In this document: in pieces, positions 14,923-47,238 of the stretch
How positions within the stretch are numbered: position 1 is the first letter of the stretch
How the letters are laid out: the number at the start of each line of letters is the position of its first letter
Source of the DNA: Scyliorhinus canicula
Taxonomy: Eukaryota
Direction: 5' to 3'
Assembly: GCF_902713615.1 (NCBI RefSeq)
Contig: NW_024055456.1
Span: forward strand, 1-64,000
DNA length: 64,000 bases
The notes under the pieces: generated by a model
What the model saw: the letters and a program-made list of their open reading frames with translations, nothing else
Told to the model about the DNA's origin: nothing
The model's database searches: none
Program-made: the position numbers and the translations under genes

Positions 14923-14969
14923 TTCAAACACTAGCTTTCGGAGCACTGTTCCTTCCTCAGGTGAATGAA
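14923..14969 (-). ncRNA. Minimal type I hammerhead ribozyme motif (PLE family A)
   Basis: Minus strand: TTCATTCAC-CTGAGGA-A-GGAAC-AGT-GCTCC-GAA-AGCT-A-GTGTTTGAA. Intact core, one mismatch in stem II, palindromic stem III, CUA cleavage triplet. Confidence 0.7.
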
Positions 14970-16683: not shown

Positions 16684-16730
16684 TTCATTCACGTGAGGAA
16701 GGAGCAGTGCTCTGAAAGCTAGGGTTTGAA
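16684..16730 (+). ncRNA. Degenerate hammerhead motif (PLE family A)
   Basis: TTCATTCAC-GTGAGGA-A-GGAGCAGTGCTCT-GAA-AGCT-A-GGGTTTGAA. C3 is mutated to G and stem I is disturbed, so probably inactive. Confidence 0.55.
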
Positions 16731-20451: not shown

Positions 20452-20594
20452 NNNNNNNNNNNNNNNNNNNNNNNNNNNNNNNNNNNNNNNNNNNNNNNNN
20501 NNNNNNNNNNNNNNNNNNNNNNNNNNNNNNNNNNNNNNNNNNNNNNNNNNNNNNNNNNNNNNNNNNNNNNNNNNNNNNNNNNNNNNNNNNNNNN
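20452..20594. other. Assembly gap (143 N)
   Basis: Run of N. Confidence 1.
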
Positions 20595-24370: not shown

Positions 24371-25449
24371 TGAGAGTCCTTTTGGTTCCCTCAATCCAGC
24401 TGAGTGTATAAAAATAATGAAGACAAAAAACAGAAGGAATTTCATCTAAACTGTCACCGTGAGAATTGAGAGTCAGGAGTGAGAGTGTCACGAACATGTT
24501 AATGCCGACAAGACCTGTTCGCAGTTCCCATCACATTAATACAAAGATAACACAATACAGGTACTATAAATCTAAAATAAACACTTAACCTGCTGGAAAG
24601 TCTCAACAGGTAAGAAAGTGGATGGAAAATCGGTTTGTTTTTCGTACATTCACATTATTTCCACTCTCACAGGAAGGTCCGGGAAGTTGAAGGATTTTGG
24701 AGGCTGATTCAGTTGCACGAACACTTCTCCCATGGTCAACAATCCTGGAGTGGAATTTGAACCCAGGTCAAACAGCTCAGAAACAGAAGTGCTGCCAAAT
24801 GTGTTACTCTGGCGGGTCGCAGTTTCAGAGTGGAATACAGTTACTTTCAGGCCGAAGAACCTGGTGCTGATAATCTGTCAGTGACTTGTACGTGAACTCT
24901 GTTTATTTCAGAATCTGCATGACATGCAGAGCAATTCCAGCAATTTCGTTTTTTATTGCCATCACACTAACTTCATCCAGTTCATATTGAAATGGTGCTT
25001 GACTTCGTAATTGAGCATTTGGGGGGAAATCTGATATATGAATAGGCGCCATTTGCTCTGATATCAATAGACGCTGTCTCTCTCTGTCACACACACATGG
25101 TTACTTCATACCCAACGTTGATTGGCTGTACTCCATTATCAGACTCGGCCCACTGATGTGGTCAGTAATGCAGTGCAGGTTTCAACTTTGAAAAATGCAC
25201 CGATAACTGTACTGTGTGCATTTAAGGTAAATATGCAATAAGGGTGGACACAAAGACGCTACCTACGCGATGGTTAATTAGTTTAACTGCCATTCAGGTT
25301 TTAATGCTCTGATTCTCTGTTACTAGTCCCATTATTATTAACGTCCCGGAAGACGTGTTTGTTAGGTGAATTGAACATTCTGAATTCTCCCTCAGTGTAC
25401 CCGAACAGACGGCGGACTGTAGCGACTAGGGGATTTTAACAATAACTTC

Positions 25450-25675
25450 GACAGGGAAAATGCTGGAAAATCTCAGCAAGTCTGGCAGCATCTGTAGGGA
25501 GTGAAAAGAGCTAACGTTTCGAGTCCGATGACTCTTTGTCAAAGCTTTGACAGAGTCATCGGACTCGAAACGTTAGCTCTTTTCTCTCCCTGCAGATGCT
25601 GCCAGACTTGCTGAGATTTTCCAGCATATTCCCTTTCGTTTCAGATTCCAGCATCCGCGGTAATTTGCTTTTCTC
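25450..25675. mobile_element. Penelope-like family B mini-element: two pLTRs in inverted orientation (226 bp)
   Basis: About 90-bp arms (25454-25544 and 25545-25633) with no loop, 3 mismatches and a 2-nt indel. Perfect 16-bp TSD TTTTAACAATAACTTC at 25434-25449 and 25676-25691. Confidence 0.85.
25510..25545 (-). ncRNA. Minimal hammerhead ribozyme variant with U3-A8 core (PLE family B)
   Basis: Minus strand: GCT-TTGACAA-A-GAGTC-ATCG-GACTC-GAA-ACGT-T-AGC. Same topology as the family A motif, with C3>U and G8>A and a GUU triplet. Confidence 0.6.
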
Positions 25676-26019
25676 TTTTAACAATAACTTCATTCCCGTG
25701 TTAATGTGAGCCTACTTATGATAATAATAACAATTTTTTTCATAATGGTTTCTGGAAACTGTGCCCCTGTCGGTTCTAAGAGCCTGTTTCCTGTATTGTT
25801 ATTTTGACCTATTCCAATCATTATTGTGCAAAGTATTTTTACGATTATAACCACACAAATACACGCTTATTCCAATGTTAGATCACGTGCTGTCTTTCAT
25901 ATGCCTACGTAATCCATGTATCACATTTTATTGCTCTCTTGACAAGTTCGTGTGATCACTACTTTCGCATATATCTCTGTCTATATTGGGCCAGGCCCTG
26001 TCTCTGTTATTACTGCACT

Positions 26020-28200: not shown

Positions 28201-28264
28201 TCCTACCCTCATCAGTAATCTATCAACATATACATACAGGTCCCTCTGATAAAAGCAAATTACT

Positions 28265-28445
28265 GCGGATTCTGGAATCAAAAACTAAAAGAGAAAATGC
28301 TGGAAAATTTCAGCAGGTCTGGCAATTCTCACAGTATCTTCATTGGAAAGTAAGCCTACTTGTGACAGTGAATATTATTATTATAGAATCTGTAAGGAGA
28401 GAAAAGAGCTAACGTTTCGAGTCCAGATGACCCTTTGAAAAGCTC
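28265..28445 (-). mobile_element. Penelope-like family B pLTR relic interrupted by a SINE tail
   Basis: GAAAATGCTGGAAAATTTCAGCAGGTCTGGCA ... AAAGAGCTAACGTTTCGAGTCCAGATGACCC. Confidence 0.7.
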
Positions 28446-29526
28446 CCTCCGATCCTGAATTATTCATTTTATTTTATTTTGCCTTTCTGCATTCTGCAGG
28501 ACATTTGAATTATTTCACACTTTTCTGCACTAAATTTAATCTGCCAATTTCCCGCCCATTCCACAAACCTGTTCTTGTTGTTTTGAAGTTGTACATTATC
28601 CGACCGATGGTTCGCAATGTTGTCACATTTCATATCATCTATAGATATTGAAAATCGCCCCTCTCAGACAAGGTTCAGGTCATTAATGTGTCATATAAAA
28701 TGCTGATCCCTGGAACATTCACTACAAATCTCCCTTCACTCCGAAAAACAGCTGGTCTACACTGTTAATTGTTTCCTGGAAATTTCCTTTCGATCTTGAT
28801 TAATTATTTCCATTGCTTGAAAAGGAAATAAACATTTGCTACTCTGTCTTAATTTCGACTCCACATCATCCCTTCTTAACGCTTTAGCTTCATTTCACGA
28901 TAATAATCATTATTAGTGTCACAAGTAGGCCTACATTAACACTGCAATGAAGTTACTGTGAAACGCCCCTAGTCATCACACTCCGGCGCCTGTTCGGGTA
29001 CACGGAGGGAGAATTCAGAATGTCCAATTTACAGACAGAATGAGAAGAATTTGACGGGTCTCCTTTAACACATATAATAATTGAGACTTTCTGCAGCAAA
29101 ACAACAATGGGATTTCAATGAGTTGCCTGTAAACATTGGCGCTGTCCGCCTGAACCCCACTTACCGGCCGCCCATGGAAACAGTCTTCTTGTGCTGTCAA
29201 CATCTTTGCCTAAAATCCGATCCAAGACCTCGGAAATGAGTGCAACTTCTATCCTTTCCTCTCCGGCCTCATTCCCATCACGGATACAGCCAGAATGTGC
29301 TTGTCTGCAAAACATAAACCCATCCATTCAAACCTTTTCACCAAAAGCGTCCTCAGTATAGTCGTTTTATAAATCGATCCTCATGGTTAATGAGAAATAC
29401 ATCCCAGGGTTAATATCTAACACATTACCACGCTGACAACCTCAGGGAATTCCATTTTAGAAAGCTCACTCTGAAACGTCCAAGAAATTTGATAGTGTCT
29501 CTGACGGTATTTCTCTTTTGTGTTTC

Positions 29527-32861: not shown

Positions 32862-33998
32862 GATGTGGAGATGCCGGCGTTGGACTGGGGTGAGCACAGT
32901 AAGAAATCTTACAACACCAGGTTAAAGTCCAACAGGTTTGTTTCAAACACTAGCTTTCGGAGGGCAGCTCCTTCCTCAGGTGAATGCAGAGGTATGTTCC
33001 AGAAACATATGTATATATATATATATATAGACAAATTCAAAGATGCCAGACAATGCTTAGAATGCGAGTATTTGCAGGTAATTAAGTCTTTACAGATCCA
33101 GAGGAAGGGGTCACCCCAGGTTAAAGAAGTGTGAATTGTCTCAAGCCAGGACAGTTTGGCAAGTCCAGGCCAGATGGTGGGGGGTGAATGTAATGCGACA
33201 TGAATCCAAGATCCCGGTTGAGGTCGCACTCATGTGTGCGGAACTTGGCTATCAGTTTCTGCTTGGCAATTCTGCGTTGTCGCGTGTCCTGATGGCCGCC
33301 TTGGAGAACGCTTACCCGGAGATCAGCGGCTGAATGCCCTTGACTGGTGAAGTGTTCCCCGACTGGAAGGGAACATTCCTGCCAGGTGATTGTCGCACGA
33401 TGCCCGTTCATTCATTGTCGCAGCGTCTGCATGGTCTCGCCAATGTAAAACGCTTGGGGACATCCTTTCCTGCAGCGTATGAGGTAGACAACATTGGTCG
33501 AGTCACACGAGTATGTGCCACGTACCTGGTGGGTGGTGTTACCATGTGTAATGGTGGTATCCATGTCGATTATCTGGGACGTCTTGCAGAGAGTGCCATG
33601 GCAGGGTTGTGTGGTGTTGTGGTCGCTGTTCTGAAGGCTGGGTAGTTTGCTGCAAACAACGGATTTTTTGAGGTTGCGCGGTTGTTTGAAGGCAAGTAGT
33701 GGGGGTGTGGGGATGACCTTGGCAACATATTCATCTTCATCGATGACGTGTTGAAGGCTGCGAAGAAAATGTTGTAGTTTCTCCGCTCCGGGAAAGTATT
33801 GGACGACGTAGGGTACTCTGTCGGTTGTGTTCCGTGTTTGCTTTCTGAGGAGGTTGGTGCAGTTTTTTGCTGTGGCTCGTTGGAACTGTCGATCGATGAG
33901 TCGAGCGCCATAACCCGTTCGTACGAGGGAATCTTTCAGCATCTATATATGTCTGTTACGCTCCTCCTCGACTGAGCAGATCCTGTGTATACGGAGGG
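32862..33998 (-). mobile_element. Penelope-like element family A, 5'-truncated
   Basis: Minus-strand ORFs 33412-33942 and 33121-33411 encode the RT C-terminus and GIY-YIG domain. pLTR at ~32862-33120. Perfect 13-bp TSD TATCTGAAACAAT at 32849-32861 and 33999-34011. Confidence 0.93.
32942..32986 (-). ncRNA. Minimal type I hammerhead ribozyme motif, intact (PLE family A)
   Basis: Minus strand: CATTCAC-CTGAGGA-A-GGAG-CTGCC-CTCC-GAA-AGCT-A-GTGTTTGAA. Confidence 0.75.
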
Positions 33999-46687: not shown

Positions 46688-46726
46688 TGTTTTTGTACGG
46701 CGCTGAATGGTTTTTAGTTCACTGTG
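46688..46726 (-). other. 23-RSS of V9
   Basis: Minus strand CACAGTG + 23 nt + ACAAAAACA. Confidence 0.95.
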
Positions 46727-47238
46727 CCTCCACTGCACAGAAATAGGTAGCGGTGTCTGTCACTCGAACGTCACTAACATTCAGAGAGCTGTGTTTCTCT
46801 GCTGAAATGAACCGAGCTGTGATCCGGCCCTGAGCACTGGTACCGCTCGCCAGGTGCTGCACGGTTCCATCCGGGTATTGTCTGTACCATTGTAGGATCT
46901 CTCCTGCTACTGTGGTGGAACAGGCCAAGGATGCAACATCTCCCTCTGCAACAACGATTGACTCTGGAGACTGTGGTACCTCGTCACTGCCAGCAGCATC
47001 TGAGATGTAAAATAACATGATAAATTTAATATCACACATACTACGAGAATATAATATAGCACAATCAAATACAACATGACATAGCAAGATATACAATAGA
47101 GGAAACTGTATGTTACTATTACTACAGCATGACAGATCTGATGTGTGAAATATTCCGCCAGATACAGTGATCACACTCACACGGAGAGAAGAGTAAGAAA
47201 TTCAGGGAGATAATCACTAAAGTGAAGCTCAGCTTCAT
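46727..47238 (-). CDS. TCR alpha-type V segment V9, apparently intact, short CDR2 region (leader 47238-47181, V exon 46999-46727)
   Basis: Leader MKLSFTLVIISLNFLLFSP then GTGAGT donor. V exon DEVPQSP...ASLACST...LQWYRQYP...DTATYFCAVE is open. Confidence 0.92.

Follow-up and report, generated by a model that had tools for sequence, protein, structure and literature searches.

In the hammerhead ribozyme the core pair C3-G8 is established (Martick and Scott 2006, as summarised in PMC3884650). Several natural hammerheads have U3 and A8 instead, the two positions covarying, and such cores are active in vitro (Perreault et al. 2011, PMC3088659). The minimal hammerheads (min-HHRs) of Penelope-like elements (PLEs) are characterized by a base between positions 9 and 10.1, a G10.1-C11.1 pair and a palindromic 15.2-16.2 segment (Cervera and De la Peña 2014, PMC4209133). 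The same study describes a U3-A8 core variant in a Cercyon PLE, with about 1,300 matches in Schistosoma mansoni, and reports that metazoan min-HHRs cleave poorly in vitro, activity requiring either a dimer or an artificial helix III. The non-LTR retrozymes of vertebrates need dimers to cleave (Cervera and De la Pena 2020, PMC7229834; preprint by Li et al. 2026, 10.64898/2026.07.22.740005).

PLE insertions typically show an inverted copy abutting the 5' end, partial tandems and a 30-40-bp tail at one end only (Craig et al. 2021, PMC8557442). In vitro, the protein of an Anolis PLE acts on both target strands, cutting and extending each of them (Frangieh et al. 2024, PMC11167929), with reverse transcription starting from two adjacent internal sites whose spacing equals the tail; the hammerhead is located shortly upstream. 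This hammerhead requires protein and its 3-8 pair, with partial rescue by the double mutant. Insertion in vitro proceeds without it, and no RNA-seq ends mark its cut (PMC11167929). PLEs have also been reported as expanded in a shark genome.

The window, that is, the whole 64-kb stretch of Scyliorhinus canicula DNA analysed here, contains at 25.5 kb what is likely a min-HHR with the known U3-A8 core, placed at the 5' end of a short, non-coding, high-copy unit that PLEs have probably mobilised. The motif shares with the Cercyon PLE min-HHR a type I topology, a short open helix I, the bulge, G10.1-C11.1, the palindromic 15.2-16.2 segment, which permits a dimeric helix III, and the U3-A8 core. As in Schistosoma mansoni, the copy number is high and the copies are mostly solo or close together on opposite strands. 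The differences from the Schistosoma min-HHRs are the host, here a cartilaginous fish, a helix II of 5 bp rather than 7-8, and the position of the motif, which occupies the extreme 5' end of a ~135-170-nt unit and not the pLTR of a documented ORF-bearing element. Sequence variation is also almost absent from the present family, in contrast to the high heterogeneity of the S. mansoni sets.

The compensated exchange of C3-G8 for U3-A8 is the same as in the variants of Perreault et al. 2011 (PMC3088659), although those are full hammerheads recovered by homology and structure searches from diverse genomes, not PLE-borne minimal motifs. The Anolis Poseidon PLE PAc (PMC11167929) likewise has its hammerhead upstream of the 3' ends or start sites and an optional tail of 30-40 nt, both target strands are cut and extended (as we infer for the unit described here), and no RNA-seq ends occur at the cut site. 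However, PAc is a C3-G8 hammerhead with an ORF starting inside it, whereas no ORF is linked to the present motif. The non-LTR retrozymes (PMC7229834; 10.64898/2026.07.22.740005) are similarly short, non-autonomous hammerhead repeats related to PLE pLTRs; unlike their tandem arrays with canonical tertiary-stabilised hammerheads and circular RNA, the family here consists of dispersed copies, either solo or fold-back, for which neither a cut nor circular RNA was observed.

The earlier note on this DNA had suggested a cryptic and perhaps undescribed ribozyme class, but the U3-A8 core was published in 2011 (PMC3088659) and, as a Penelope min-HHR, in 2014 (PMC4209133). The U3-A8 Penelope min-HHR is thus already known, and the cartilaginous fish family adds to it; a literature search of incomplete coverage found no report of the variant in cartilaginous fishes.

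The U3-A8 motif and a second hammerhead family

The motif and its parts, all on the minus strand, are as follows.

25509-25546, minus strand: minimal type I hammerhead motif with a U3-A8 core (direct reading, descriptor match and minimum-energy fold)
25546-25543 with 25512-25509, minus strand: stem I, 4 bp, AGCU/AGCU (direct reading)
25542-25536, minus strand: core UUGACAA, that is, U3 U4 G5 A6 C7 A8 A9 (direct reading)
25535, minus strand: bulged A between A9 and G10.1, one unpaired nucleotide (direct reading)
25534-25530 with 25525-25521, minus strand: stem II, GAGUC/GACUC, 5 bp, loop AUCG
25520-25518, minus strand: GAA, that is, G12 A13 A14
25517-25514, minus strand: palindromic, self-complementary ACGU (A15.1-C-G-U16.1)
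25513, minus strand: U17, with the predicted scissile bond between 25513 and 25512

Read directly on the minus strand from 25546 to 25509, the motif is composed of AGCU, UUGACAA, A, GAGUC-AUCG-GACUC, GAA, ACGU, U and AGCU, and stem II is closed by the G10.1-C11.1 pair (G25534-C25521). This reading confirms the minus-strand fold given in the earlier note, with stem I one base pair longer than claimed. Every sequence feature of the PLE min-HHRs is present: the core boxes, a Watson-Crick 3-8 pair, the bulge, G10.1-C11.1, a short open helix I (4-5 bp), a paired helix II, the palindromic 15.2-16.2 segment, A15.1/U16.1 and U as H17.

The minimum-energy fold of the isolated 46-nt RNA includes helices I and II and has exactly the hammerhead secondary structure (-10.6 kcal/mol, z = -1.55); by itself, the fold energy is unremarkable. 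Two copies of the motif folded together with RNAcofold give an extended duplex, not a dimeric hammerhead, an uninformative outcome. The motif differs from canonical tertiary-stabilised hammerheads in that no covariance model matches it and helix I is open and loopless. Since helix I has only 4 bp and no loop for tertiary contacts, poor activity is predicted at physiological Mg2+.

A descriptor was constructed that calls for the core boxes, allows a bulge and further specifies stem II (at least 4 bp), GAAA, a helix III that is palindromic, U16.1, any base but G at position 17, and stem I (at least 3 bp). Set to a U3-A8 core, it has a single match in the 64-kb window, the 25.5-kb site, and with a C3-G8 core again a single match, at 32948-32982 on the minus strand, which belongs to the 'family A' of the earlier note. 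In 200 dinucleotide shuffles, 0.01 (U3-A8) and 0.005 (C3-G8) matches are expected per window, so the hammerhead observation is real rather than due to chance. Copies of the second repeat family are the following.

32948-32982, minus strand: canonical-core (C3-G8) minimal hammerhead of a second repeat family (descriptor)
14929-14963, minus strand: further copy of the C3-G8 family
16690-16724, plus strand: further copy of the C3-G8 family

The C3-G8 family is built from CUGAGGA, a bulged A, GGAG/CUCC, GAAA, a palindromic GC, U16.1 and A17, a layout identical to that of the U3-A8 motif. The earlier note's claim of a compensated core within a shared layout is borne out, with both motifs found by the descriptor. 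This exchange between the two repeat families, C3-G8 against U3-A8, is the only compensated change. The copy at 16.7 kb has G at position 3.

No hammerhead match was obtained with Rfam for the 25.5-kb locus or the whole window, either at the gathering score or at E <= 10, and the Rfam hammerhead models likewise leave the C3-G8 family in the window unmatched; for min-HHRs the missing match is expected. A search for CUGANGA would, as the earlier note anticipated, overlook the U3-A8 motif, which CUGANGA and Rfam searches both miss.

The head-to-head insertion at 25.5 kb and other copies of the unit

The motif forms the inner end of the minus arm of a head-to-head insertion, whose parts and surroundings are given below.

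25343-25449: left half of an unrelated, very abundant SINE-like interspersed repeat, which resumes after 25691
25436-25449: target-site duplication TTAACAATAACTTC, left copy, 14 nt, up to 16 with the preceding TT
25450-25544, minus strand: minus arm, short-form copy of the repeat unit without the 3' tail, 5' end at the palindrome centre
25545-25677, plus strand: plus arm, long-form copy of the repeat unit
25639-25677, plus strand: 3' extension ('tail') of about 38-41 nt, plus arm only
25678-25691: target-site duplication TTAACAATAACTTC, right copy

The ~230-bp palindromic block is one head-to-head insertion inside the older SINE-like repeat. Its arms (25449-25535 and 25552-25638, 87 nt) form a near-perfect palindrome with 95% identity, and the SINE-like sequence after 25691 is the continuation found in the loose-end consensus of reads and contigs at 25449. 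The arms join at AAAG/CTTT and each starts with (AG)CUUUGAC, so the self-complementary AGCT can be shared by both. The minus arm has its outer end at ...CCCTGTCG (25450), and the plus arm extends ~38-41 nt beyond the equivalent point to a long 3' end, ...GTAATTTGCTTTT, which is also the end of the copy at 28251. These 3' ends lie ~62 nt and ~102-105 nt after the predicted cut. In the hammerhead region of the plus arm (25543-25578), two core A's are missing relative to the minus arm (UUGACA-GAGUC). Among contig joints, fold-back junctions at 25540-25546 occur in further genomic copies, and at least one head-to-tail junction exists elsewhere in the genome, in which 25546 is joined to 25456 across six intervening bases.

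An inverted copy abutting the 5' end, a one-sided tail and a target duplication of 14-16 nt together constitute PLE insertion anatomy, and on these signatures the unit was most likely mobilised by PLE machinery. The locus is one insertion event, with two copies of the unit head to head and the self-complementary AGCT as the meeting point of their 5' ends. Such an arrangement is the expected outcome if target-primed reverse transcription took place on both DNA strands and began at two alternative internal sites, as shown in vitro for an Anolis PLE. The assignment to a Penelope family in the earlier note stands as far as these signatures go; no reverse transcriptase or GIY-YIG ORF accompanies them among the ten longest of the 25 ORFs of at least 110 aa in the window. 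Domain matches of these ten are limited to a weak zf-RVT and an immunoglobulin V-set. The V-set domain is encoded by the ORF at 46719-47180 on the minus strand (Pfam E = 2.8e-10). A run of 143 N (gap or masked) occupies 20452-20594.

Further copies of the repeat unit are present in the window.

28251-28443, minus strand: solo copy, with the duplication ATCGGAGGGA / ATCAGAGGGA at 28444-28453 and 28241-28250
1789-1875, minus strand: short-form copy with the core region decayed or truncated
53396-53487, minus strand: older subfamily copy within a tRNA array unit, with UUGACAA and with ACGAC replacing ACGUU
54921-55012, 57214-57305, 60218-60309 and 62531-62622: paralogues of the 53396-53487 copy

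From the solo copy on the minus strand at 28251-28443, with its flanking duplication, the 5' end of the unit can be set at (A)GCUUU. This copy has a decayed core (UUUUCAAAGGGUC) and contains an internal foreign insert of ~58 nt. The stem I flank pairing that the earlier note had described at 28.4 kb (GGAGCU/AGCUCU) does not hold, as the extra bases are target-site duplication. Both types of 3' end recur, the short one at 1.8 kb and the long one at 28.25 kb, differing by ~40 nt. The foreign stretch at 28340-28397 on the minus strand partly matches the SINE-like repeat flanking the 25.5-kb insertion (TCACAAGTAGGCTTAC), and could derive from a template switch or from an insertion at a later time. 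In two exact-pattern scans of metagenome contigs, no more copies were found.

The copies at 53.46, 55.0, 57.3, 60.3 and 62.6 kb are located at a constant offset after a tRNA-Val gene, and the array units align through both flanks, so the five copies represent one insertion multiplied by array duplication. Their recurrence consequently lends no support to A8 as the family state, contrary to the use made of it in the earlier note. That note had also placed the core in every array unit: repeat copies are indeed there, but four of the five read UCGACAA, with C4 replacing the invariant U4, and ACGAC replaces ACGUU in all five, with loss of the palindromic helix III feature. In the four copies with C4 the 3' strand of stem I is ACUU. 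The tandem tRNA array itself spans 52977-63935 in units of ~2.3-3 kb and carries tRNA-Val (CAC, AAC, TAC) and tRNA-Arg-ACG. At 59251-59326, a Val-type tRNA body (67 bits) has an anticodon loop assigned by ARAGORN to Glu-TTC, possibly an anticodon-shifted paralogue or a pseudogene.

The young family across genomes and in RNA

DNA contigs of two species and raw RNA reads of one species were compared with 25250-25560 at a likeness of at least 80%, and differences were tallied at places where they reach 5% of depth. Five A>G places reach this level in each DNA run, and T>C places number two in DNA run X1 and one in X35; all of these are located outside the motif. A>G at 25542 or 25543 and T>C at 25536 each remain below 5% of depth in both species. 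U3, U4 and A8 are thus kept in more than 95% of the family in both species, with C3, C4 and G8 each below 5%, and the abundant young family has UUGACAA as its state. Variants listed within the motif are limited to CpG transitions, one at 25515 (3-4%) and one at 25521 (about 4.5%).

The contigs of the two species therefore uphold A8 as the family state (U3, U4 and A8 each above 95%), as proposed earlier. The earlier note had allowed that the young consensus might read CUGANGA or lack the paired stems; in the contigs it does neither. An origin of U4 by CpG decay of UCGACAA, suggested by the array copies, was rejected for the young family, as no A>G reaches 5% at 25542. In the young family no stem variant reaches 5%, and a family so nearly invariant provides no covariation support for the helices.

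From the summed depth over the motif relative to unique flank, copies with the core were estimated at ~10^4 and those with the tail at ~10^5, figures to be read as orders of magnitude and not as copy numbers. In RNA run X22, the majority of reads covering the motif derive from one or more other genomic copies, which have variants of their own at 25515, 25524 and 25525. These reads share an upstream flank that begins exactly at the 5' end of the unit (loose end 25546), which indicates that at least one solo copy elsewhere is highly expressed; this copy probably sits inside a host transcript.

Cleavage, alternative readings and meaning

The predicted cut between 25513 and 25512 shows no accumulation of molecule ends in two oligo-dT RNA-seq runs, where the threshold of one fifth of local depth excludes only a major cleaved fraction. 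RNA depth is smooth through this position in both orientations and tracks the 5'-ward fall in genomic copy depth from the tail. Solo and fold-back copies start 34 nt upstream of the predicted cut, from which it follows that the reverse-transcribed RNA was uncut. By its sequence and layout, the 25.5-kb motif is a hammerhead-type motif with a putative cleavage function. Any cleavage would be weak, occurring as a dimer in tandem transcripts or with the help of protein, as in other PLE min-HHRs.

Copies that begin upstream of the cut, and hence derive from uncut RNA, together with the absence of RNA ends at the cut, make it quite possible, albeit short of probable, that the element is hammerhead-derived and catalytically silent, its fold being carried along or kept for another role in the retroelement. 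Such roles might include a 5'-terminal structure or protein-binding site, and RNA cleavage would then have no part in the life cycle. The literature is in part favourable to this possibility: hammerhead mutants of the Anolis PLE show unchanged insertion in vitro, with no RNA-seq ends at the cut (PMC11167929), PLE clades without a hammerhead proliferate well (PMC8557442), and metazoan min-HHRs are poor cutters in vitro (PMC4209133). Against it, all catalytic core positions are conserved in over 95% of the family, positions 3 and 8 have changed as a compensated pair and not singly, and natural and engineered U3-A8 cores have been reported as active (PMC3088659); a young family would, however, look conserved even without selection. 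An active and probably protein- or dimer-assisted U3-A8 ribozyme, fixed in at least two cartilaginous fish genomes at a copy number that a rough depth ratio puts at ~10^4 or above, is unlikely.

The palindrome itself raises a further possibility, that a perfect hairpin of ~190 nt is the relevant structure at 25.5 kb and, if transcribed, would give double-stranded RNA and possibly a small-RNA precursor. A 211-nt transcript through the insert folds at -162 kcal/mol (z = -22) into a hairpin of ~95 bp that hides the motif, and because of this hairpin and the core bases lost from the partner arm, the ribozyme is not expected to act at 25.5 kb. RNA reads with opposite-strand joints indicate that some fold-back copies are transcribed somewhere in the genome, and miRNA-precursor models in Rfam match both strands below threshold. 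Nevertheless, the hairpin is a by-product of the head-to-head insertion and leaves the family-wide motif unexplained, which makes this reading decidedly improbable. The miRNA-precursor matches are far under the gathering score (46 versus 90 bits), and a miRNA-precursor identity was rejected, the matches being likewise a by-product of the palindrome.

Finally, it is most improbable that the 5' part of an ordinary SINE or LINE tail merely resembles a hammerhead once C3 and G8 may vary, since, for all that Rfam gives no hammerhead match, the fold z-score is unremarkable, no PLE ORF is at hand and the motif came to light in the earlier note only when two invariant positions were relaxed, chance matches to the full descriptor are expected 0.01 times per window, the bulge, G10.1-C11.1 and the palindromic ACGU match beyond the core as listed PLE min-HHR features, and the element has the fold-back, one-sided tail and duplication anatomy of PLE insertions.

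The preferred reading is thus a PLE-type min-HHR with a known core at the 5' end of a short mobile unit, and knowledge of hammerhead catalysis is unchanged by it unless cleavage is shown. If the motif is active, nature would have set up a test of the 3-8 core pair in a vertebrate, with a C3-G8 family of like layout alongside, and the 5'-terminal AGCU, identical to the four bases after the scissile bond, would reflect a role in processing or joining that is undescribed for Penelope-like elements.

The 25.5-kb locus is a clean in vivo fossil of features recently demonstrated in vitro with a Penelope enzyme, namely both strands primed, two alternative start sites and a one-sided tail. Both minimal-hammerhead families of this genome escape standard tools (CUGANGA patterns, Rfam), so that ribozyme counts for shark genomes come out too low. 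With this family, a high-copy U3-A8 hammerhead core in a vertebrate joins those of trematode Penelope elements and scattered other genomes.
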